Part shown: one piece after another, positions 6,565 to 43,300 of the stretch
Layout of the letters: each line of letters starts with the position of its first letter
Position numbering within the stretch: the stretch's first letter is position 1
Source: Tubulanus polymorphus
Taxonomy: Eukaryota; Animalia; Nemertea
Length of the DNA: 64,000 bases
NCBI RefSeq assembly: GCF_964204645.1
Contig: NC_134034.1
Coordinates: forward strand, 5,740,914 to 5,804,913
Direction of reading: 5' to 3'
The notes under the pieces: generated by a model
What the model was told of the DNA's origin: nothing
Seen by the model: only the letters and a program-made list of their open reading frames with translations
Databases searched by the model: none
Program-made: the position numbers and the translations under genes

Positions 6565-8942
6565 TATCAGCAACTATACCCGACTATAGGGATGAGATCT
6601 GGCCAGTTGCTTCCCGGCTCATGTTGGCTACGATCTGGCAACTAAACCGAATGCAGTAAGGTTTAATGGCACGCGCAGCGTTGAAATTTTCGAGCCGCGA
6701 AGTCATGCGCCGAAATGTCAGTAGATACGTACACGTAAATGACGTCATCTTGAAACACCCGAAAACAAAAATGTTTAATTCAATTTCTTTTATCATGGCA
6801 TTGGCTTTTGGATGCGTTTTGAATCAAAATATGTGTCTAGCCAAAAATAAAACCGCAAGAAACAACTGTATGACGTTTTTTACATTGTACAATAGGACAA
6901 GTTTATTTCAATGAAAAGACGATAGCTGGATACACATTTTTCAGACATAATTCCTACAGAAATGATACACGAGTATGAGTATACAAAGTGACGAAGAAGA
7001 CACACGACATGCGAGTTAAGATTCGTCATACCTAATTATGGCTTCATCTTGATCACAAGACGATTAATACCATTGATTTACTAAACATATCGTTAACAAT
7101 AATTCAGAGATAAATCAAATCACGAACTAAATCAAATCACGAACTAAGGCTTTGGTCCTATACATAGTCCAACACTTCATACAAAGCGGAATACATTCAA
7201 ATAATCCATAGGAAGGCTTTACGTAGAAATAATGTACTGGTGAGACCTATTGTTCACTCCTCGGGAATTGGTCAGGCCACAAAATGGTTAGGTGGCTAGT
7301 TTCTGATATAGACACATGACTAAAATCTTATTTCAAAATTTGGACCGGTCAGTGAAAAAAAATCCCATCGTTTCCGATTCATTTATATGTTATTACAAGA
7401 GAGTTGCGAAGGTTTTTTTGCTTGGTGGATTATGGAACCCGATTTAATTGAAAAATTCTCCTAAAAGAGCTTATCGAGTAACATCATACGACGAGTAACA
7501 CATCATGACCTCTACGAGGCGTTATCAACTGTTTTCTTTTTTAATAAATTATGTTATCTTATCTTTTATTACGAGAACCAATTAATCAATCTCTACCGAA
7601 CTTTGCACGATTATGTACCGATAGTTGGTGGGGCATTTTCATTGCATCCCAGTATTACTAAACCCAGTCTTTTACATTCCATTTTATAAACTGCTTTCCC
7701 AAGAACAAATTGGTGATACTTTACATAAAGCAATTGATACACAGGCCAAAACCATTGCCCATTGCCCATAACACATATCATAATAACTGACATAATAATA
7801 AAAGGTGTCTATTATTCCCAGGAACATTCACAAACTCGGTATAGTACTAGAACTGGGGACTGGATAAAAGGTTATCAGAAACAGGATATGATTTGGGTAA
7901 TTAGCGATAATCAAAGTGAAGTAAAATAATTGGCACCCAGCAACATAAAAGAGCAGATTCTGAGGGCATTTTGAATAGAACATAATAAAAAACGCTTTTA
8001 AAATTACATGTACCTAGTTGACCAGCCACATTTTCTGATTTAATGTACACATATTGATACATGTACATAAATGTTGATTGACTAAGAACACGCATCCATT
8101 AATGGATGCAGTCTGGACTGGCAAATGGTTGATAAACTAAAGGTGGATGGAATAACTTGATGGGGTACTACATTCCCAGGTGTTTAAAACCATAATTGGA
8201 AAAATAACATCACATTAATAATACACAATCAGTAATTACAAACTAATAATCAGCAATCATACATTAATAATTCCATTATAGACATCAGCACTATTGATAC
8301 CAAATACCCATTCAGATATTTGCTTTGCATTTTAACTACTTCAATCACACAATGGATTAAGAATGGACATGCAGTTTTATCAAGACTGGATGTTTTCAAA
8401 ACCCAGCTTCCGTTCAGAGTACCTCTATGGGAGGTCCGTAGCTTATAATATATCTTAAATGTATGTGACAGCCATTCATATATTATATATACTTAAATCT
8501 GCAGTGGCTTGGAATGGTTTATTAGCACATGTGCTAAACAATTCAATAGCATACATATTACTTAAGACTTAGCAGCATTACTTAAAAAGAGTTTTGTTTT
8601 CATAATTTCATATTTGGAATAAAAATATCACATCCTTTGAAATGAATTTAGAATTCAATGGAACCCAAGCATTAGAATAAATGAATATTGCACAAACTGT
8701 GATGTTTGTCACAGGTGATGAAAATGATGGACAAGAATTGCCCATACAATATTTGCCACTAGATTGAATTCTAAAATATATCAACTCATCATATCTTCAA
8801 CCATTCTAGATGCCAAAGCTTTAGCAAGATTAAGTAAAAACTGATCATCCCCTTGAACCCATAGGGGTGGGTCGCATCATCTGGTGCATGATTAATAACA
8901 ATATAAGTTAATACGGAATTATACGTCATTGTGTATATATGA

Positions 8943-19700: not shown

Positions 19701-22268
19701 CAGAACTCCTCTGTAACCACGGTTGTTCCGGTCTTCATCTACAGCGATTGCGCTTATGCCAAGATTGGTTTTTTTGTCCAAAACTAATGCGTTTACGCCA
19801 AAGAGTTGACTAATTTACAACCTCCGCATAATCATAGTTCCGGTTTTTATCGAATAGCAGCGCTAGTGTACTGCCTGTCACACCCGTCAGCAACATAGGT
19901 CAAAACAAACAGTCGTGTGCTGTGAGGATCAGCTGGCAAGTTTGCAAGCGTCCTGGCTACGTAAATTTGCATTACTGAGGTCACGACTGTATCATCATCA
20001 TTTTGTACACAGGATAGCTTATCTTGATCAATGCAACAGATGAAAATGCAAAGGTGGGAAAGAACCTTCCTGATAAGATTTATTACATGGCCCCCAATAA
20101 ACCAAAAAACATATTTCAGGCATATGGCAACAATGACTCATAAAATCAGTCGCAGTTGCTAAGGGAACATATTTTTTCTCATTAATCAGCATTTTTCTTT
20201 ACGGTACCTGTTCTGTTACCTGTGGCTACCAAAAAAATACCTCAATGTGACACTTGTCATAAAGAGGCAACTTGATCAGCCAAGAAAGGGTTTAGACCAT
20301 TCAGGTAATTATTTCATGCATAAATGATTTAAAAGGAACTGAACAGTGCTATTTCAACATGCACACCGTTTGAATAAAACATAATTAAAACTACAAGACC
20401 CAGCTCCGCAGCAGGACTATCATTCAATTTAGCTATTTCCTCAAAACTTGGAAATTTATGTTAATTTTTTCTCAACTACAACGAAACTGGTTCTTGTCAC
20501 AATGCGATTGAACAAAACACTTACGATGACTACATCACCACCGGTACCAAGTGCAATCTTGTCACCATGGAGACTACGAGAAGATAGCGGGGATAGGCTG
20601 CAAATATTGCGTGGTGATGATGATGATGATGCTGTACTGCTGCTACGAGACACTGGTGAAGACGGTGTAGGAATTTTCAATCTTGGGGTTGATGAGGTCA
20701 AACTCTTTGGTGATGTTGGAGTTCCTGTCAACTTACTGCTCGTTGAAGTAAGCGAAGGAATTTTTGACGTTGATTTGAACGAAGATTGTTTCTGGGGTGG
20801 AGTGGATTTTTTTGGGATCTTGCTAGTGCTGCGGGTATTCACATTATCATTCATGAATGGATTAAGAACATCTTTGTGAGCAGAGGCCTCTTCGTTGTTT
20901 GAATAAAAAGGATTTGTCCGCATCATAGACGTGGTGTTTTCTTCGTCAATAAAAAATGGATTCGTTTCTTGTGTATATTTTTGACCATCGCTGCTAAGCA
21001 ATGAAGCAGTTATTGTATCAAGTTCAACTGTAATTGGCGAAGAAGGGAAATCAATCATGATTTCTGCGGAGTCATATTTCATCGCAGAGGTGTTTGATCC
21101 GGATGAAATTTTTCGTATGGGTAATGCAGATCTTTTAGCAGGTTCACTCACTCCACCTTTTAGTGGGGGAGACGCTGTTGCATCTTTGGCGGATGAAATG
21201 TCAAAAGCTGCGGATTCTTTACAAGTAGCGGTTACAGGATTTACCGGACGATGGTCTGTTCTCACTTTTTGGGGCAGTTTAGATCCTGATAAGTTCCTCA
21301 CTTCAGAAGATGAATTCAAAGTCGATGTTTTCCCCTAAAGATAGAGATATGAGGCGGTAATGATAATGAATGTGAATGAAAGCCAAACGTTTTGACATCA
21401 GTGCAAAATACTGCAGTATACATGTGCCTACATAAATACTATCATCAACTATAATTTTTGTTACCGGAATTATCATTTTCCCAAATCCGTTTGAAAAAAC
21501 ACTTGCTTTCATGATAAAATCAACCAAATAAATACTCTCAAATTTACTTTTAAGGAAAACAATAATGGTTGCTTTCTTAACCGATTTGAGTCGAGTCACC
21601 ATTTATGCTAACAAATATGAAGGCAGGGTAATGATTAGAATGGAGCACACTACCGCAATTGGACTAACCACCACTGATTTATCATTTAATGGTACAAATT
21701 CAGACGTTATGCTAAAACAGGTATGTTAAAATTGATCTATACTAAGAGATGAACAGAATTTGGAAATACATTACACACATGTTAAAACTAATTAACCCTA
21801 TCCACAAATTATAATCCACTCATTGTACTTACCGAAAATGCAACACTTTTATCATTTGTTTCTAACAAATTGCGGGATGAATCGAGCCTAAAATGTACAA
21901 ATGAATGAGTTGCAATAAGAAAAATACATTTGCAGTTATCTATTTACAATACATGATCCTCTATCAACCCAAGTATCAAACATAAACTAGGAGTCCATGG
22001 ACACCATGCCCACTTGGTATGTGGTTTAAAATGATTAACAATCTAACAATTCAATATTCAGTGCCCCCTGGTGAAAATATAGTGAAATCAATGACCTTAC
22101 TACACTAAAACTTACTACAATCATAGAGATACTAAAACATTCTATCATTTAATGCCCCCTGGTGACCATATACAAAACCCAATGACCTTGAAACTCACCC
22201 CGATCATAGAACATGTCATGAGTACTATAGTCGGGTTCGTCAAAGATTCACTAAAATTGATAATTAAC

Positions 22269-22322
<54 letters not shown>

Positions 22323-25300
22323 TAACCAGTTATTTTGCGTCCAGGGGTAGAATGAACTAACCAGCGCTAAACCACAGGAAGATGATTTAGGCCAATCCCC
22401 CCAGACGACTGGTTAAACGCTCATGTACGATTGGTCAGTCTTTGTTTTACAGCAAGAGAAATAACTTTAATTGTTTAACTTAATTACAAGAGTCACTCAG
22501 TCACTCTGCAGCAAAAATTGTTTACAAGAAAATATAGTTACAGTCAGTGGTTTTTATGAACGCTTATGTACAGATAATAAATCCTGCACATAGAACTATG
22601 AATATGTAGATAATTAAAAATGAATTACTAACACATTTTATTTGAAGATTATTTTGTATATATTCCCTATAACACATTTGATAATATACTATGTATTATA
22701 CTTATATAATACCCTATAATATACCCTATAATATGAGCTACAACTTCGTAATTGATTACAGTTACTAAATATGTATAGATACGGTAGACAAATTGTATAT
22801 TATTCAATATTTAACTTCACCTGGTGCAAGAACAAAGAATCAGGTGATCCCAATCTCACGTGAGGAGATGTATCCAAAGCCATTGCTAAATTAAGATATC
22901 AAGACTATAAGTTAACCCTTTCACTGCCAGTATTTTGTAATTAATTCACCCTCTCCTGCCACTTAAAATTACAATTTTTGGAACTAAAATTTGTATTTCC
23001 GAGTAGTACTTACCCTTTCCTATGGTTTTTGCCAATATTTTCTAAATTTGGATTTATCGCCAATGGTTTTTCTATACGACCCGGCCCTGCGGTATTGCAT
23101 TTAGCCACCGGCGAAATCCGCCATCTTTTTTCGTCATAGCAGACCAAAAAAAAAAACAGCTATGCGGGGCAGGTGGGCGGGATTCCCACCATAGGAAAGG
23201 GTAAGTACTACTCGGAAATACAAATTTTAGTTCCAAAAATTGTAATATTTCCATCGAGTACTGTACCCTTTCCTATGGTTTTTGCTAGACTAGCCTAGCA
23301 CAAGGATGGTGGGAAAGGTAGATAGAAAAACCACCGCTCAAACGCAAGGTAAGAGGGAAAAAGAGAGCACTTACCCAAGCACGGAATGGAGCACTGTAGC
23401 ACAGGGAAGACCGGTTGGCCACAGTGAGTCCGTCCAGCTCAGGAGCCCCCCCAGAATTTTGCGAAATTAATACTTGCAGATATGAGCCCAAACTATGTAC
23501 AAGGATACACCCCCTGTGATCCTGATAATGCTACATAAATATTCTACACTAAAGGGTCCGATCGGAAAGAACGGACACCTTGAGCCATGACAACAGGACC
23601 AAGTGAAGCTAATGAGCCTAACTGGCCTGAAACATCCCGTAAATAAAATGACGTGAATGTCGACGGTGAATTCCAAAAGGCGGCCCGACAGACTTCCTCC
23701 AACGGAGCACCCGAAAAGGCTGCGCAGGAAGTAGCCATAGACCTCACTTGATGAGAAACGACTCCCTCCGAGGAAAGATTCTCCTTCAATAAAATGTCCT
23801 TGATCATTGAAGAGACCCATCGGGCTACTGTGTCCCGCGAAATATCACCCTTTAGGTGATCCAGCAGCGGAATAAATAACCGCTCCCGTGAACCCCTCCG
23901 TGAAGCAGAGCGATCTAAATAGAAACACAACGCCCGCACAGGACATAAAGTCCTGTCCGGGATGCCCGGTTCCACTCGATGTTTTAGGGCTTCAATTCGC
24001 CATTGACGCCCAACCGAGCCTGGTCGTTGGTTCTTTGCCAAAAATTCCAAAGCAGGCCGCAGCGAAACAAATTCATTCGCTGGCCCAAAGACAATGTGAC
24101 CTTGTCGGACTGAAAGCGCATGAATCTCAGAGCGACGGGCCGAGCAAGCCAAGAACAGCAAAAATACAGTCTTTTTTGACAAATTTGCAAAAGACGCTGC
24201 CGAAAGAGGTTCAAATGGAGCCTCCATTAACTTCTTCAAAATTACAGACAGATCCCATGGTGGAACTGTCCTTGTTACCCGAGGCCGGGAAATAGAAAAC
24301 CCAGCAACCAGCTGGGATATCCGATGATCCCCTGCTACATTTGGCCATCCAGAAGCACGCAATGTATGAGAAATCGCGGAGCGGTAACCTTTAATAGTTA
24401 TGACCTGTAAACCTTTTGCTACAAATAGGTGCAGTAAAAAATCTGCCAATTGAGCTACAGAGGGTGAGCATGGATCAATTTCCCCTGCAGCACACCAATC
24501 CGCAAAATGACTCCATTTGGCATCGTAAATGGTACTTGTTGATGGCCGCTTAGATCCTGCGATAAAGGAGGCAGCCTGTTCTGAAAAGCCTGAAGCTGAC
24601 AAGGATCGCTGGACAATGGCCAGGCGAGCAGATTTAACCACTGGCTGTTTGGATGATGCCGAAAGATCCCCTGAGACAGAAGCGATGGGAAATTCGGAAG
24701 AATCCTGGGGTTGTCGCACAGTAGGTTGAGAAGTGGTAGGAACCATTTCTGAGCCGGCCAACATGGTGCTACCAGAACTATGTTGCAATTGACTGATCTC
24801 TCTATTTGATCCAGTAGGCGCGGCAGGACTGGTGTGGGCGGGAACGCATACGCATGCATCCCCGACCAGTCCAGAGAGAAGGCATCGACCCCCCACGCTT
24901 CCGCGTCTGGAAACGGGGACACAAACAGAGGACACCTCCGATTGAACCGGGTGGCAAACAGATCCAGCAGCGGATTGCCAAAAATGCCCCGAACCCGATC
25001 GGCTACTTCTTGGTGGAGAACCCATTCTGTCGCAATAGCCTGACCTCGACGAGACAGAGCATCGGCCATCACGTTCCTTTTCCCTGCTAAATGTGCCACA
25101 GTCAGGGACACGCCCTTTGTCTGGCACCAAAGAAGAATTTTGGCCGACAGACCTGTGAGGGTTTCTGAGTGAGTGCCCCCTTGGTTCTGAAGGTAAGCCC
25201 TCACTGTTGAATTGTCTGTGGCTAACCAAACGTGGTGGCCCTCCACTCTCCTGTGAAAGAACTTCAGGGCCTTCCACACGGCCAGCATTTCTAGGAAATT

Positions 25301-28300
25301 TATGTGGTTGATGGCCTCGTAGCGAGACCATTTCCCGGCTTTGACTCGGTTCTCCAGATGTGCCCCCCAACCTTGGTGACTGGCATCCGTGAATACACGA
25401 ACTGGAGCCTCTAACGGGGCTAGTGACACCCCGAGCCGAAGATTCGTAGTGGCCGCCCACCACTGAAGATCCGGACTTAGATCGGTTGGAGGTACGGGAA
25501 TCAAGGCCTCCCAGTTGCCCTTCGACTGAGACCAGAAGACCTTCCAATATTGTTGCAAGCGCCTGCTTCTGAGGCGGCCTAAGGGCACCACCAGACCCAT
25601 GGAGCTGATGGAGCCTAGAAGCCGTGACCAGTAACGAGCTGTTCTCGGGGTTGTGGACACTCCCGCTACAGCTTCATGAAGTTTGGCCACTCGAACCATA
25701 GACGGAAAGACTTTGCCGATTCGGAGATCGAAGTCCATGCCGAGATAAGTGAACTGTTGGGCCGGCGTCAACTGAGATTTTTCCCTGTTTACGCGGAACC
25801 CTAGCTGATGGACTAAGTCCAAGACTGAGGTCATTGCCTCCCGACATTCCTGAGCCGAATTCGCGACTATTAACCAGTCGTCGAGGTAAACGAACAGTCG
25901 AACACCCCTTGACTGAAGTACCTTCTGAACTGACTTGACCAACTTGGTGAAAACCCACGGGGCCGTACTGAGGCCAAATGGAAGAGACCTGAATTGGAAC
26001 TGGCGGCCTTTCCACTTTATCCTGAGAAATCGCAGAGATTTTGGGTGAATTGGAACCTGAAAGTAAGCATCCTTCAGGTCCAATGAAGCCGCCCATTGAC
26101 CCGGACGGAGCCCTTGAATCACGTCCTTGGGCTTGGTCATCCGGAACCTTGGAATGTCTAGGTGCCGATTGAGGGATGACAGATCTATCACTGTCCGTTG
26201 ACCCCCTGTGGCCTTTGGTACCATGAATATTCGAGAAAACCAGCCGGGAGAAGTTTCGTTGCAAACTGGTTCTATCGCTCCCTTCTCTGCCAGTTCCTTG
26301 AGAGCCGGAGAGATTAAGGCCTCCTGACCTGGTTTTGGCCGCATGTCAGGAGGTGACCTCATCAGGCGCGGTCGCCTTAGGAAACGGAGATGGTAGCCCC
26401 GAGAGACGACCCGGGAGGGCCAACCGTCTCCAAAGAGGTCGGACCAGTGGGTTGCTGCCTGCTGCAGACAACCTCCCACTGGTCCCAAGAATTCATTTCG
26501 AGTTTTTCCGAAAGGAAGAGCCCCTTTTTGGAGCCTTCCCCTTGCCTCGATACGAACCGGAACTGTTACGACCGGACGAGGCTTGACACGATTGTTGAAG
26601 TTGCGCGCTAGTTCTCCAACCGGCATCCGAAGCCGCCTGAGAAAGCGCTGAAGTTTGAGATGGTCCTGTTTGCGTCCGTGCCGAACCTTGCGCCGCCGGC
26701 GTCGGACCAGAAAGCTTTTTCCACGGAGTTCGGGGGTTGGACTTGGCCTGAACCTCCCGAATCTTCCTCAGCTCTGCGGAAACCGGAGCGCACCAACCGG
26801 AGAAGAGACGTGAAGACGTCCCCAATGGGGCTCTCAGCAAAGCATTGGACACCATATCCGGTAGACGAGTCTTGGCACTGGAGTCCATCACTGACTGACG
26901 GGAGGCTAACACCAGATTAGCCTGACCCCAAACCGACAACGGAATTACATGCGAAACAGACCGAGCCAAAGATTGGATAATCCGGTCCATTCCCTCCAGT
27001 TTTAGGGCAACTGACTCTGGGTCGGAGCCCGCATGAACGGCGGCGTGAGTCTCGCGAAGCTCACCCGTCAACACCTTAAGTGCCATATCTTGAAACGAAC
27101 CAACCCTGGTAAGATTGTCCAGGATTGACGTCATGGCCACCAAACCGGACTTAGGCAAACGAATACCCGACTGTGCTGTAACAGTATCCGGGCTGATCAA
27201 AGTATAATCAGCATCCAGGCAGTTATGACTGTGATCCACAGCACCTGGAGTTGCGTAATACGCCGAGCGAAATGCGCCTATAGGTGGATCGGTTGAACTA
27301 AAATATTTCCCAGATTTCATACCCCGTTCTGGAGGGGGAAATGAAAAAGTTCCAGGCCGACATTCACCCCATAATTGCGTATCCAATCGAGCCCATTCCC
27401 TTGAAACCGCTGACGATTCCCGTAAAACGTTAAGATCGGAGTCCGGAGGGCGATAAGCTTCCATTGACTCACCGACCAGAGGAGCTGCTGTGGGCTTAGC
27501 GCGAGTTGCCCCGTGCTTGACAAAGAACTCACTTATCATCGCTCTAAATGGCATGTCCCCCGCTGGTTCGGATAAAACTGAACGGGACGGAGATACATTG
27601 CGAGCCAGGGAAGCCCCCATCGTCTGGGGCAACCCACAATTGCTTGCGACAGGAACGACCCCAAAAGGAATTGCCGCCTCTGGGACCGGATCCTCATTGA
27701 AATCAGACCCTACCGCAGCATCCAGGAATTCAGAGTCAGAATTCCGAAAAACTGAGTGGGCTGGCGAACTTCTAACCGGACAATCAGGAATAGGCTTACC
27801 TGTTGTAGAAGTTGCAGCGACTTGTTGCGACGAAGATAACAAGTTTAAAATTTTCTCCTCAAATACATGGAAATCCTTCTGAGTCGGGTATTTTCCAGTA
27901 TCCCGACGATCATGCCGACTTCGGTGACGGTCCCTCGAACGGGATCGCGACCTACTAGAAGAATCGCTTTCATCGCTAACCGACGTCGACGAACGATGAG
28001 AAGACCGACGGCGAAACTTCAGACAATAACGATCGTAGTCCCTCTCGCGATCAAACCTTGATCTGCGAGAAGGAGATCTAGCTCGTTTATTACGCTCACG
28101 GCGTCTAAATCTAGTGGGAGAGCGAGCTCTATCCCCGGAGCGACGATCAGAATCAGACGATGAACGTACCGGATGTTTTGAACCGGACGACGTCTGGACC
28201 GGACCGGTGGCCGAACCGGACCGATGCCCGACCCGGACCGGTACCGACCGAACCGGTGCGGGCCGTTCGCGACTACCGCGGCGCGCGCTCGGTTCCGAAC

Positions 28301-31300
28301 ATGTAGTCTGAACCGGCCGAACCGGCCGAACCGGTGAACGACCAGAGACCGGTGAATGACCGGAGACCGGTGCCGGTGAACGACCAGAGACCGGTGAATG
28401 ACCGGAGACCGGTGCCGGTGAACCAGCGTTCCTCCCCGGTGAACGGAGTTGGGAAGCCGATCGTACCTGAACGCCCGGCGACCGCTCCGCTTTACGATAA
28501 GAAACAGGATTAGAAACGTCGGTTGGCACATCGGCCGAAACCGACGAATCCCTGCTAACTCGACGACGATCTCTTAGTTTAAGAGCCTTATCGGCCCGAA
28601 GCCAAAGGTCCTCGGACCACACGACGCAAATATTGCAAGGATTGCTCCTTGCACATATTTGACCGGATTTGCGCCTGCACGACGCACATGAATCGTGGTT
28701 GTCCCAGGCGCCAAACAAATGCCCGCATCCCTCCCCGCCACGATGCTGACCCTTAGGAGGGGGTGGCATAATTATCCTGTTACAAATCAAAACAATTCAA
28801 TTCAATTCAATCAAATTATATTTGTAAATAAAATTCTTACGGAAAAAAAGAAATCAGGGATAACCCCCAAACCGAACGGACTCACCGTTACCAGAGTGAA
28901 AACTCCCTAATATCCTAATTCCCAGATTTTTACGGCGAAAAAATCCAACGCGTTCTACTGCGAGAACGCCAAGAAAAAAGATGGCGGATTTCGCCGGTGG
29001 CTAAATGCAATACCGCAGGGCCAGGTCGTATAGAAAAACCATTGGCGATAAATCCAAATTTAGAAAATATTGGCAAAAACCATAGGAAAGGGTACAGTAC
29101 TCGATGGAAATATTAGTGGTTTCGTAGGTATACAATACAATATATTCAATTAGCTCCATGGCTTATACTACTGAATTTAACAGATGCAAACTATATATGG
29201 TTAGAACGTAAATATACTAATTATTATTCTTATTCCACCAAAAAAGTGATGCAGTATAAACTAGGTCAACCAATTACGTCATCGAGATGGCCGCCGAACT
29301 CCGTTCCAATTGAAAAATGAAATTTCGAACTCATATATCATGCAACAGTAAGCAAATATATGATTATTTTCGATCTAATACACTTTCATGTAATGATTGC
29401 TACACAATAAAGTTTATTTCACATTGATAACCATAATAATTCAGTTTTTATTGATTTTTTTTTGTGCCAGAATATGGTCACTTCACTGATACTAAAATTC
29501 TCGGATTTCTAACACACGTTCAATTTTTGGTCAGATTCTTTTCAGCATGCCATTTTTTGAAACAAGGATAAGGACACAAGGGAATGTTACCACAAAAATA
29601 ATGACCAGCTGGCTGATTTCCATCACTGTTATAATCATGTTCATCCAAATTATTTTCAACATTGCCATGGTAACTGTCAAAATCATTACCCTCAAAATCC
29701 GAACTACTATCCTCAACACCAAACGATGAATTCTCATCTGACGCTTCATCACTTAAATGGCCAGATGTGTTATAATTCTGATTAAAGATATCAACGAATT
29801 GGTCCAACCTTAGTCGCTTTGATGTTCTAGCATTGTCCATAAGACAATAATCACACTTGTTATTACACATCAAGTCATTTTCTAAGCGTAAATTTTACGT
29901 AAAAGCGTACAATTTTTCCATAAAAACTCCTTGAAGTTAATTTTGTGTCTGTATTACCGATATAGTTCTACCAATATCCGCCAGACACTTCCTAGTGATA
30001 TTTATTCAACTCCCGACTATTTCGGGAGCAGCAGTTATAGGGTTAAAACCTGTTGATATTTCCTTGAAAAACCTTTTTCCACCTACGAATGAGTACTGAT
30101 GACACCAATATGGCTGCCAATTGCGTGAAAATTGGCTGATCGAAAATACTTGATGATGTATTAAAGACGTCTTTTCAAAGAATGCCCATCACAAATTTCA
30201 ATGGAAAATGGCAAACCATTAGGAAGCAACAGGTCTCAGAATTCAGGGAAAAATTGACATTTTTGGGCACAAAAAAGGTCACAGGACGGCCATCCAGTAT
30301 CCATATACAGCCATCCGGAATCCATATACCAGTCCAATCGACCCAATTCTTCTCATGATGATGGGCCCTTTGGGAATTCAAATACATGTATATGCAAAAG
30401 ATCAAGATGATTAAAAAAAAATAAAATATAAGCAGGTGGTGACGCCTGATTGTTTATCGACCTGACAAGTTTACTTAGTCAGCACTTTTGAAAATGTATG
30501 CCATATGGCAGCCGTCACTACCAATGAGTTTAAATAAATATCTGTTAAATACCCATACCTTTTATCATTCGAAACAAGTTCATCATTTTCCAAAACACTC
30601 TGAGGTGGAATCAATAATGTTTCATCATTGTGCGAACTAATTCTAAAAAAAACCACAAAAGAATCATGCAAACATACAATACATGTGTAGTACATAGGAA
30701 CCAGAAATGACAACAAAACACATTTAGTAAAATAGGGGCACGTTGGATCAGTCTACTGAGCTGCCAACCTCTACAAAGTGCTAGTAGTATCAAATTGAAT
30801 TTTTTCAGTAACATTTCATTGAAACATGAAAGAAAAAATTTTCAAATTAATCAGTCATTAACCTCTTCACTACCACAGATAATGTAACGTACCTCACCAG
30901 GATTCGAACCCAATGGCATCATTCAATTCAAATAAATTCGGTATTAGAGGCTGTAAGAGGTACAAATCCTCCATCTATGAGTAAAAATTGGAACTAAATA
31001 GAAGCAGACAAGCATATAGTACGGCTACACGCCAGTGGCGTAATGAATCGCCACACCAGCGGTTGTAGTAAACACATATATTTGCGACGTAAATATACGT
31101 CACAAGTGGTAATGAAAAGGTTAATAGTAAGACCCTCAGTAACATCATTCATATTTTTGTATGGATCGAACAAATCAAATCGGTATTTCGTGTTATAAAA
31201 CAGTAACAATTACTGAAAATCAGGAAAACGTAGTTGACAGCTCTAGTCTATAACAGAAATAAAGATACTGGCCAAAATAATGAGTCTAGAATTTTCTCAT

Positions 31301-40300: not shown

Positions 40301-43300
40301 GAATTTCCTATCTTTATAGCGCCTCTGGTAGGTTGCAGGGTTCGGAATCAGAGTTAAATAGGTCATCGTAATTCTCAGAAATGGCTGGGGTAGATATCCA
40401 ATGCCGGAAGTGTTTGAGTTTTGGCCCAAGAAGTTAAATCAAATATTTTAATCCCAGTCTCTATTTGTTATGTTATGAGACGGGTTATGTTCAAGTAATT
40501 GACAAGTATTTCTTCATTGGTAATCGAATAATGAAGAGTTGCATATTCATGAGGGTGGAAGGGTACATGAACAATTACATTTTTTATCGAAGTGAAGAAG
40601 AAATTTCAGCAAGACAGGAATAACACATTGTCAAATTGATTTTTTATGTGAATGAATGAAGTATGACATTACCTGTATCTGAAACGGGAGCCCATTCGGA
40701 AGAAGTTTTGCCGCGCATTTGGACCCTTGACTGGTCCCTTGAGACGGAAGAATGAGTGATGCTCAACAGCGCATTTCCATAAATGTTTACATTCTTTTTT
40801 GTGAACCAGTCGGAATACAAAAGTATGTTCCTGTTCCCTGCCCTAAAGATGAATAGAATATAGGATACAAGAAATTATCCGGAATATCAATATATGAAGA
40901 GAAGTGTTCATACTTTACAAATCCAATCAAATGAAAATTTACTCATAAATTTCTACAATAACACAAACATGGCTTTCGTGGCAATCACATACCAGTAGTG
41001 AGAAAGTTGTCTCCATGGATAACATGGGAAGTGTCTTGAAATGCTCAACAGTCAGAAAATTGCAATATTCAATCCTACTGGTGAACGTATAAAGAAACCA
41101 ATGACCTCGATACTTACCAAAACCATAGAAGGTGTCAAGATATACAATTTTGCAATTTATAGTGGTAAATGAATGGTGGTAATGTAAATAGTGGTTATCA
41201 TGTGAACAAAGGATGCCCGATTTGGCCCAACAAGATGAACACAGATCATCATTTTCCAGGCCCAAAATAGGTTAAAGAATCCCTCATCATCTCGATGCAG
41301 GCCTTAAGGGAGCAGTATTATCACAAATAAAAAAAAACAATTAAATATAGTAATTAGATTAATAATGATATACAAATGATATTCAAAACTATACTATTTT
41401 ATGTACTAGATACAAACACCTTATATAGAAATATCATGGGATAGCTATCAAGGCCTATATTACAGCAATTTAATTGCACACCTAATAATAAAGTGAAAGG
41501 GAAACCCCCAAACGGAACGGACTCACTGACTGTTTACAGTGCGTCTAGCCTCCCTTATCTTCCTAAATCCCAAATAAAGGCTGGCTTATGTCGACAAGCA
41601 ACGCGACGCCTACCGACTCAACTGAGAGCAACCGCAATCGCAGCCCAGCGTATGTCAACTGCACTCCGATTCGCGGCAACTGAGGCCGACTAGCGGGATA
41701 TGAGATCCGCCCAGTTGCTTCCCTGCTTATGTCGGTTACGATTACTGGCAACTGCAACGGCTCAGATGGTTACGTGTTAAGCATTTTGAGAATAAATTAA
41801 AATTATTTTGAAGGAAATTCATTTCTATTAGAAAAGCTATTTCTTTAAGATCTTTATCTATCTGATTCTGTTATGAATACGATGTGCTAGCGACATTATA
41901 TAAAGATGGCCGCTCACACCATAATTCTCCCAATGTCGTTTCTAGATCTTCGGTCCAGTCATCTGCCGTGCTCAAGGTTTGGTTTACATTTTGAACTACT
42001 TGAATTTGAAAGTTTATGACTAATTACAAATGAAGCTAACTGGCGGTCATAATTTGTATTATGTATATGCCGTCTCTTATTGGCTGTAACCCTTGCGCTC
42101 AGTTCTTTCGCATTGCAAATCAGCTTACGGGTATGTCGTTTGCGATCGAAAGCAACTGTCCGCCTATGGTAGATCATGGGCAACTAGTCGGATACGGCTT
42201 GCAACGAGTCAGTAGGCATCGGGTTGCCGTCCCAAGCCGGCTCATGTCGAACCTTTACAGCTGCAACTGGCGGCCTCCCTAGGATAACCAATCTACAGAA
42301 TTTCAGTAAGTTATCTTAAACCGTTTATGAGTTATAGCCCGTAAATGAAAATTTAAAAAAATGACTTTCTGCGACCTTGACATAGACCTACAGGACCCAA
42401 AATCTAATCAGTTACTAACCTCATATAGTACAACAAACTGTTGAATTTGAAGAAAATCTGTTTAAGGGTTTAGGTGCTAGGGCAGACCTGCTTACCCCAA
42501 AATTTCAAAATCAGTAGTTTTGCATATTTATCTCAGTAAAAATAAGCTCACATCAGTAGTCTTAATGAATATTTGTCTCTCAGTTATTTCCAATTAAGCA
42601 TCAGTAGTTTTATATCATAAAATCAGAAGTTTCCTTTAGAGTATCAGTAGTATCAGAAAACAGAATTAATTTTAAAAAGTAAAATTGAATTTTCATTATT
42701 TTTTAAATTTTTCATTGTTCGTCCGGTCAATGAGAACCAAAATCTGAGTATCGGAAGGATAAAAAAACCTCAAATGTTCTTAATTAACAGACAGTATGTT
42801 CAAAATGTGGCATTTAATTTAGCAATATTGATCTTTTCCCGGGAGTGAATCTACTTAGTATTATGGAAAAGGTATCAGGCAGGTGCTGCGACTATCAGGT
42901 GATAAAAGGATAAGTAGTGGGTTTTCCCCAAGGGTGAAAAGATCTATCAATAGTCAGGAAAATAATCGTTTAAAAAGAAAATAGAAAAAACAATTTCATT
43001 TTTATTTCTATTTTGCCTTCCGACATTAAACCTACCCATAAAATAAAAAAGCCTTGCCACACTAAATACAGTAACAACCACTGTTAAGTCAATGAGTCTT
43101 TACCCCAAGTTTTACCATCTGAAGAAATTTATTTCAACGTTTATTCATACTTGTCAATTACTTAGTATTTGTTCGGGTCACGATAAAATATTCATTGAAA
43201 GTTTATATATTTCAAAAACTTTTCATTTAAACACTGCATGAAAACGTAATCATAACGCGTGCGCCAATGTGAGCATTGGTACGCTGTCACAAGTGACTGT

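Follow-up and report, generated by a model that had tools for sequence, protein, structure and literature searches.

The window analysed here, a 64,000-nucleotide (nt) stretch of the Tubulanus polymorphus genome (contig NC_134034.1, positions 5,740,914 to 5,804,913), carries on its minus strand, at 22965-29115, a complete DIRS1-type retrotransposon of 6,151 bp. We consider it probable that this element combines a 109-nt GT-AG intron in its leader with synthesis of Gag-Pol by a +1 ribosomal frameshift, and has no second spliced messenger RNA (mRNA). Taken separately, splicing of the leader intron in the element's own transcripts is likely and, judging from sequence comparison, production of Gag-Pol by +1 frameshifting is very likely, while there is very little chance that a second acceptor yields a spliced pol mRNA. 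To our knowledge, the expression of the overlapping open reading frames (ORFs) of DIRS elements has never been worked out, and the locus offers two concrete answers: one is a leader intron with a donor that was observed to be used, the other a +1 shift site that families from several organisms have conserved. The features on which the argument depends are as follows, in coordinates of the window.

28886-28972, minus strand: leader exon, untranslated and without ATG; a contig of sequencing run X5 covers 28960-28886
28777-28885, minus strand: candidate spliceosomal intron of 109 nt within the leader, GTGAGT...TTTGTAACAG, 30% GC, with its donor used in an RNA-like contig
26493-28769, minus strand: gag ORF of 758 aa, Cys-rich at its N-terminus, with a region of SR/RS-rich repeats and a tail of basic residues
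24455-26626, minus strand: pol ORF coding for reverse transcriptase (RT), RNase H and a weakly Dam-like methyltransferase tail; its frame is +1 with respect to gag and is open from 26767
26508-26516, minus strand: TCC_TTT_CGG, read in frame by gag four codons ahead of its stop; candidate site of a +1 programmed ribosomal frameshift
26637-26638, minus strand: AG put forward as a second acceptor, situated 10 nt upstream of the pol-frame ATG; in our judgement not functional

An earlier sequence-only reading of this DNA had assigned one donor and two acceptors to the element, and the motifs themselves are all present. The donor ACG|GTGAGT lies on the minus strand with its GT at 28885-28884. In the gag acceptor motif, ttttgatttgtaacAG|GATAATT-ATG, the AG occupies 28778-28777 and the start codon of gag is at 28769; in the pol acceptor motif, cagcgctttctcAG|GCGGCTTCGG-ATG, the AG occupies 26638-26637 and the start codon of pol is at 26626. 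Joining the donor to the first acceptor would remove 28885-28777, an interval of 109 nt that stops 7 nt short of the gag ATG; its boundaries, ACG|GTGAGT ... AACAG|G, form a GT...AG pair with a consensus donor as in U2-type introns. The GC content of this interval is 30%, compared with 44% in the leader exon and 55% in gag, and the fall lies exactly between the GT and the AG. The donor hexamer alone is not exceptional, GTRAGT being found 5 times in sense and 4 times in antisense orientation within the 6.15-kb element. Two further consensus GTGAGT donors are situated within gag on the sense strand, at 27532 and 27472 (minus strand), and no joints from either were seen.

Use of the leader donor was observed in a chimeric sequence. 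A search of sequencing runs returned five runs, none of them on record as RNA. Runs X1 and X4 behave as DNA, with high summed depth (hundreds in X1, thousands in X4) and contiguity through the intron, which one X1 contig crosses without a break, and run X6, guessed to be RNA, showed no coverage of the element stretch. Run X5, from 2014, is transcriptome-like (18.8 M letters, longest contig 9 kb, terminal repeats uncovered) and covers the element in unspliced form from at least 23300, the start of the compared stretch, to 28224. A 104-nt contig of X5 follows the leader from 28960 to 28886 and then continues into 30 nt foreign to the element, which have a single genomic match, at C2:7961837-7961866, with one mismatch. 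There, the 30 nt begin directly after the canonical acceptor tttgtttcag| of an exon that translates to laminin-G-like sequence (locus L031, G000:C2:7960337-7963366; exon start C2:7961866, minus strand). Since the join is exact on both sides, the contig represents a splicing product, in which the spliceosome used the donor 28886|28885. The leader donor is thus functional, as seen in this one RNA-like contig, and the chimeric transcript indicates that such insertions can donate a first exon or a cassette exon to host genes.

The genomic copies of the element are consistent with an intron that is retained in the template for reverse transcription. The element is one of well over 100 near-identical copies: a first look at 5' ends in the 268 Mb genome gave 445 candidates, and the 40 that were scored are 96-100% identical, so the family (family A) is very young and conservation within it says little. 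Copies were searched with short window-derived patterns for each exon (leader end, gag start and pol start, with 86, 121 and 120 matches, respectively), and the matches were paired by their coordinates. The distance from leader end to gag start in paired copies was 112, 111, 106, 101 or 87, and never 2, the value expected without the intron; among the same matches, no leader end adjoined a pol start, and no processed copies were found. The earlier proposal that unspliced RNA is the template fits this absence of intron-less genomic copies.

Among 50 copies that were aligned or scanned, GTGAGT is kept in 43 of the 46 that retain the region and the AG in 43 of the 50. The first ~35 nt of the intron after the GT form a conserved box, with the AT-rich remainder rich in indels between lineages. 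Both splice sites are kept in lineage 1 (TTTGTAACAG|G) and in lineage 2 (TTGTGACAG|A), although the two have introns of different length and diverge in the sequence around the AG. The splice sites are therefore preserved while the interior drifts, indels being confined to the interior, as is expected of a U2-type intron, the degraded lineage 3 excepted. The 3' part of the leader pairs with the conserved box after the donor in a predicted long hairpin (28850-28972, minus strand), and leader plus intron are predicted to fold stably (z -2.7) with the donor inside the hairpin, a structure that, if formed, could regulate splicing or mark the template.

A protein search of the same genome identified two further DIRS families, B and C, with about 60% amino-acid identity in pol; L060, L061 and L069 are relatives from other samples with about 50% pol identity. 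Family B comprises 18 near-identical copies (L078-L082, L083-L100), one of which, L080, has its inverted terminal repeats (ITRs) at 1865-2011 and 7756-7919. Its leader exon of about 144 nt ends in the donor TTCGG|GTGAGA, which is followed by an AT-rich, intron-like interval of about 211 nt containing an upstream ATG (uATG) and closed by the acceptor-like aacccttcattttcAG (cattttcAG) 20 nt before the gag ATG, with a second TAG 8 nt before it. This interval is kept in 18/18 copies. In family C (L077), a strong pyrimidine tract and AG precede the gag ATG (gtttggtattttctttcAG|ATA-ATG), and in the foreign relatives L060 and L063 the same combination is found 7 and 12 nt before it. The leader intron layout put forward by the sequence-only reading thus recurs in full in family B and, as an acceptor-like AG, in family C, L060 and L063; the junction of the element itself was the part that was not seen. 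Alignment of leaders across families is meaningless beyond the ITR end, and the common layout is therefore not simply inherited sequence.

The candidate frameshift site was identified at the end of gag. TCC_TTT_CGG stands in frame in gag, and the pol +1 frame is open across it from 26767, the arrangement found at influenza PA-X-type sites; the conserved pol N-terminus, GPVGGCL, starts right at the gag stop. All six of the families compared that have overlapping frames, three from this genome and three from other samples, have pol in the +1 frame and an in-frame YCC_TTT_CGK situated 4-19 codons ahead of the gag stop. Throughout, Phe is encoded by TTT and Arg by CGN.

Family A (window element), this genome: shift motif TCC_TTT_CGG
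Family B, this genome: shift motif CCC_TTT_CGT
Family C, this genome: shift motif CCC_TTT_CGG
L069, other sample: shift motif TCC_TTT_CGT
L060, other sample: shift motif CCC_TTT_CGT
L061, other sample: shift motif TCC_TTT_CGG

Two more elements, L062 and L063 (43% pol identity), were set aside as comparators for the frameshift, being too distant; pol of L062 is in a different frame, and that of L063 has its own ATG after the gag stop, with no TTT_CGN. The sequence UCC_UUU_CGU is the experimentally established +1 frameshift site of influenza PA-X and is conserved in ASXL1, and UUU_CGN is the +1 shift site of amalgaviruses (PMC5644247, PMC5052127). The published efficiency is about 1-2%, and a PA-X-type site with CGG still works, though less efficiently (PMC5644247). 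The window element therefore shares with influenza A PA-X, vertebrate ASXL1 and the plant amalgaviruses the same E-, P- and A-site codons in frame (UCC_UUU_CGG here and UCC_UUU_CGU in L069), together with a downstream ORF in the +1 frame and no need for a stop codon in the A site. It differs from them in its predicted product, a retroelement Gag-Pol fusion.

Several observations weigh against the combination of a leader intron and a +1 shift. The 28886^28776 junction of the element itself appears in no contig; X5 leaves 28225-28885 uncovered and barely covers the leader, and as contigs also drop rare forms, missing junctions are not evidence of absence. The only junction seen joins the donor to a distant host acceptor, which may reflect cryptic splicing at a transposon site; in that copy, the element's own acceptor seems not to have been dominant. 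In the reference, no DIRS copy lies beside the host exon (the exon's own locus and 10 kb upstream were examined), so the source of the chimera is probably an insertion absent from the reference individual. Lineage 3, in which the site reads GTGACCGATTAATTGAATAATTATG, lacks the AG; the copies of this lineage, degraded and 80-92% identical to the window, differ in their internal deletions, from which it appears that their ancestor spread without the AG. The pyrimidine score of the gag acceptor, 0.59, is average and under the loosest cut-off of 0.60, so that this crude test lends no support, and no donor was identified in family C. As regards the shift site, in-frame TTT_CGN occurs 4 times in the window gag where 1.3 are expected, and the S/P-F-R encoded there could be a conserved gag peptide motif.

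The full model of the sequence-only reading, in which one donor serves two acceptors (28777 and 26637) to give separate gag and pol mRNAs in the manner of foamy viruses, appears very unlikely to us, and the part of it that fails is the second acceptor. Its appeal lies in the functional leader donor, in the +1 frame, which is open for 141 nt upstream of the pol ATG, and in the AG that, with 65% pyrimidines before it, stands 10 nt ahead of that ATG. A YAG with at least 65% pyrimidines is present within 15 nt upstream of 2 of the 79 sense-strand ATGs, the pol site included (8 of 79 qualify at a 60% cut-off), which makes the pol-site motif modestly unusual, with about a 3-10% probability by chance. 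Conservation of the site within family A was discarded as evidence: the copies differ too little, and the AG makes up positions 2-3 of a gag CAG codon, so that its conservation in lineages 2 and 3 is uninformative. In favour of the model, a pol-frame ATG is found in family B as well, 113 nt ahead of the gag stop; however, the sequence preceding it, aacaataacaatttgaact|ATG, has neither an AG nor a pyrimidine tract. Ahead of the conserved N-terminus of pol (VGGCL/VGACL), a pol-frame ATG is missing from family C, L060 and L069, so that these elements cannot start pol independently. Among relatives, the AG and pyrimidine tract before the pol ATG are thus not conserved, one of the outcomes that the earlier reading had itself named as refuting its proposal. 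In addition, the context of the window pol-frame ATG is weak (C at -3), and no gag-less genomic copies with the leader adjoining the pol start were found. The 28886^26636 joint was not seen in the runs examined, in which leader coverage is too thin to prove absence, and an X5 contig is uninterrupted from 25689 to 27711, across the proposed acceptor. The conserved +1 motif, by contrast, accounts for pol expression in all six families.

A more serious competitor, although still rather unlikely, is that splicing has no function in the life cycle of the element. The GT...AG pair would then be incidental, the donor box would have some other role (RNA structure, packaging or a promoter-proximal function), pol would still be expressed by the +1 frameshift, and the chimeric RNA would be a case of ordinary exonisation, at a cryptic donor carried into a host gene by the transposon. 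The unseen junction, the equal frequency of GTRAGT on the two strands, the loss of the AG in lineage 3 and the lack of processed copies in families A and B all agree with this explanation. So does the conservation of 35 nt after the GT, well past the needs of a donor, within a stable fold that places the donor in a hairpin. However, it leaves unexplained why the layout of exon, GTGAG, AT-rich stretch, AG and ATG should be found again in family B, whose leader cannot be aligned with that of the window element, and why strong acceptors should stand just before the gag ATG in five families. The uATGs in the intron-like intervals of family B and L060, which splicing would remove, and the GC minimum bounded exactly by the GT and the AG also favour a genuine leader intron. 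In some animal groups, trans-spliced genes typically have their acceptors a few bases ahead of the start codon, and the AG upstream of the gag ATG might by its placement be taken for the acceptor of a host spliced leader rather than the partner of the element's own donor. We regard this as extremely improbable, since there is no evidence of trans-splicing in this organism and a good cis donor, the use of which in cis is shown, lies 109 nt upstream.

If the leader intron and the +1 shift are both real, expression of the element can be pictured as follows. Transcription would start in or just inside the left repeat. Part of the RNA would lose the 109-nt leader intron (28886 to 28776) and serve as the gag(-pol) messenger, and the unspliced RNA would be the template for reverse transcription; with an unspliced template, all copies are expected to keep the intron, in agreement with the lack of processed copies. 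Ribosomes would translate gag, and a small fraction of them may slip +1 on the UUU_C of UCC_UUU_CGG (26516-26508) to give Gag-Pol, as the conservation of an experimentally validated motif would suggest. Extension of this scheme to a clade of animal DIRS1-like retrotransposons is tentative, being possible rather than probable: spliced RNA as the messenger, unspliced RNA as the template with the structured donor box as a possible packaging or priming signal, and Gag-Pol via a UCC_UUU_CGN +1 shift. A retroelement that keeps an intron must exclude its spliced RNA from reverse transcription, and this young family, with its well over 100 near-identical copies, would be a good system for finding the signal responsible.

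Partial parallels to such an arrangement exist among other retroelements. In Ty1/copia elements (BARE, PMC3735527; Arabidopsis copia, PMC5580714), the intron is likewise kept as only the unspliced RNA is copied, and splicing yields a dedicated messenger. However, the copia/BARE intron removes pol to give a gag-only mRNA, whereas that of the window lies wholly in the 5' untranslated region and leaves coding capacity unchanged. The leader donor resembles the retroviral major 5' splice donor in its position just downstream of the terminal repeat and in the conserved, structured segment that follows it. In contrast to the retroviral and foamy-virus pattern, the first acceptor here precedes gag and not a downstream gene, and the foamy-like pol acceptor, the counterpart of that behind the spliced pol mRNA of foamy viruses, failed the comparison with relatives.

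Neither an overview of DIRS1-like elements (PMC3266345) nor a survey of fungal elements (PMC3783388) mentions introns or splicing. A literature search for natural DIRS introns found none, work in Dictyostelium having used artificial introns only, and no paper linking DIRS with ribosomal frameshifting was found either, although subscription papers may hold prior mention of both. If correct, the intron and the frameshift together would be the first defined expression strategy for the DIRS order.

The remaining anatomy of the element is that of a DIRS1-like retrotransposon, and a short relic of a related leader is found elsewhere in the window.

28973-29115, minus strand: left inverted terminal repeat, with its core at 28973-29094 and an outer end, to 29115, complementary to the internal complementary region (ICR); pairs I1 (122 nt, 99%) and I3 (43 nt, 100%)
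22965-23132, minus strand: right inverted terminal repeat with extension; pairs I1 and I2
23188-23285, minus strand: ICR, complementary to the outer ends of both terminal repeats; pairs I2 and I3
23544-25547, minus strand: third ORF, candidate tyrosine recombinase, with a 3' half that does not overlap pol and R...HxxR...Y motifs found by reading
41498-41526, minus strand: short remnant of a related DIRS leader, in which GTGAGT and the conserved box survive

The terminal repeat arms, 23011-23132 and 28973-29094, are 99% complementary over 122 nt, and the ICR (23188-23285) pairs with 22965-23026 and with 29073-29115, as is characteristic of DIRS1-like ITR/ICR systems. With Dictyostelium DIRS-1 and the animal elements surveyed in PMC3266345, the window element shares these inverted terminal repeats and an ICR matching both termini, a gag ORF, a pol ORF with RT, RNase H and a putative methyltransferase, a candidate tyrosine-recombinase ORF that has a long overlap with pol, and a length of about 6 kb. 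It differs from them in the leader intron candidate and the defined +1 shift site, both of which would be new for the group.

The pol ORF matched the Pfam families RVT_1 (8.8e-23) and RT_RNaseH (3.4e-07), and a homologue search with it returned 1350 homologues. Its Dam-like tail matched Pfam Dam below threshold (E 0.16), and the region is conserved with relatives covering 93% of pol. The third ORF, which has conserved counterparts in families B and C, had no Pfam match and gave only weak Cre/Tre matches (E 0.3-0.8). The Pfam search of the element's ORFs matched neither a protease nor an integrase, in keeping with a DIRS1-like element, in which RT and RNase H of the Ty3/gypsy-related type come without a protease or DDE integrase. 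For gag there was no Pfam match, and a homologue search, in which low-complexity words dominated the candidates, returned nothing; families A and C have a gag N-terminal motif in common. Exact-protein look-ups of gag and pol matched no record.

The sequence-only reading had also noted a diverged relic of the same leader near 41521-41526, and this is borne out: the stretch 41526-41498 (minus strand) gives a 93% match of 30 nt to 28885-28856, and GTGAGT is part of it. No DIRS coding sequence was detected around the relic by tblastn.

Within gag, one older copy, L053 (G000:C1:23260327-23267000; 94% identical), has a 7-nt deletion at about 2500-2560 in the gag tail that unites the gag C-terminus and pol in a 1057-aa frame; it contains other frameshifts too, and no conclusion was drawn from it. 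The SR/PV-rich part of gag includes a 42-nt tandem repeat (28313-28414, minus strand) that differs in copy number among genomic copies, and a joint skipping 42 nt is seen in X1 and X4, along with nearby insertions of 5 and 10 nt. Just beyond the right end of the element are a pair of 54-nt direct repeats and a palindromic stretch rich in TA (22045-22189, 22253-22336).

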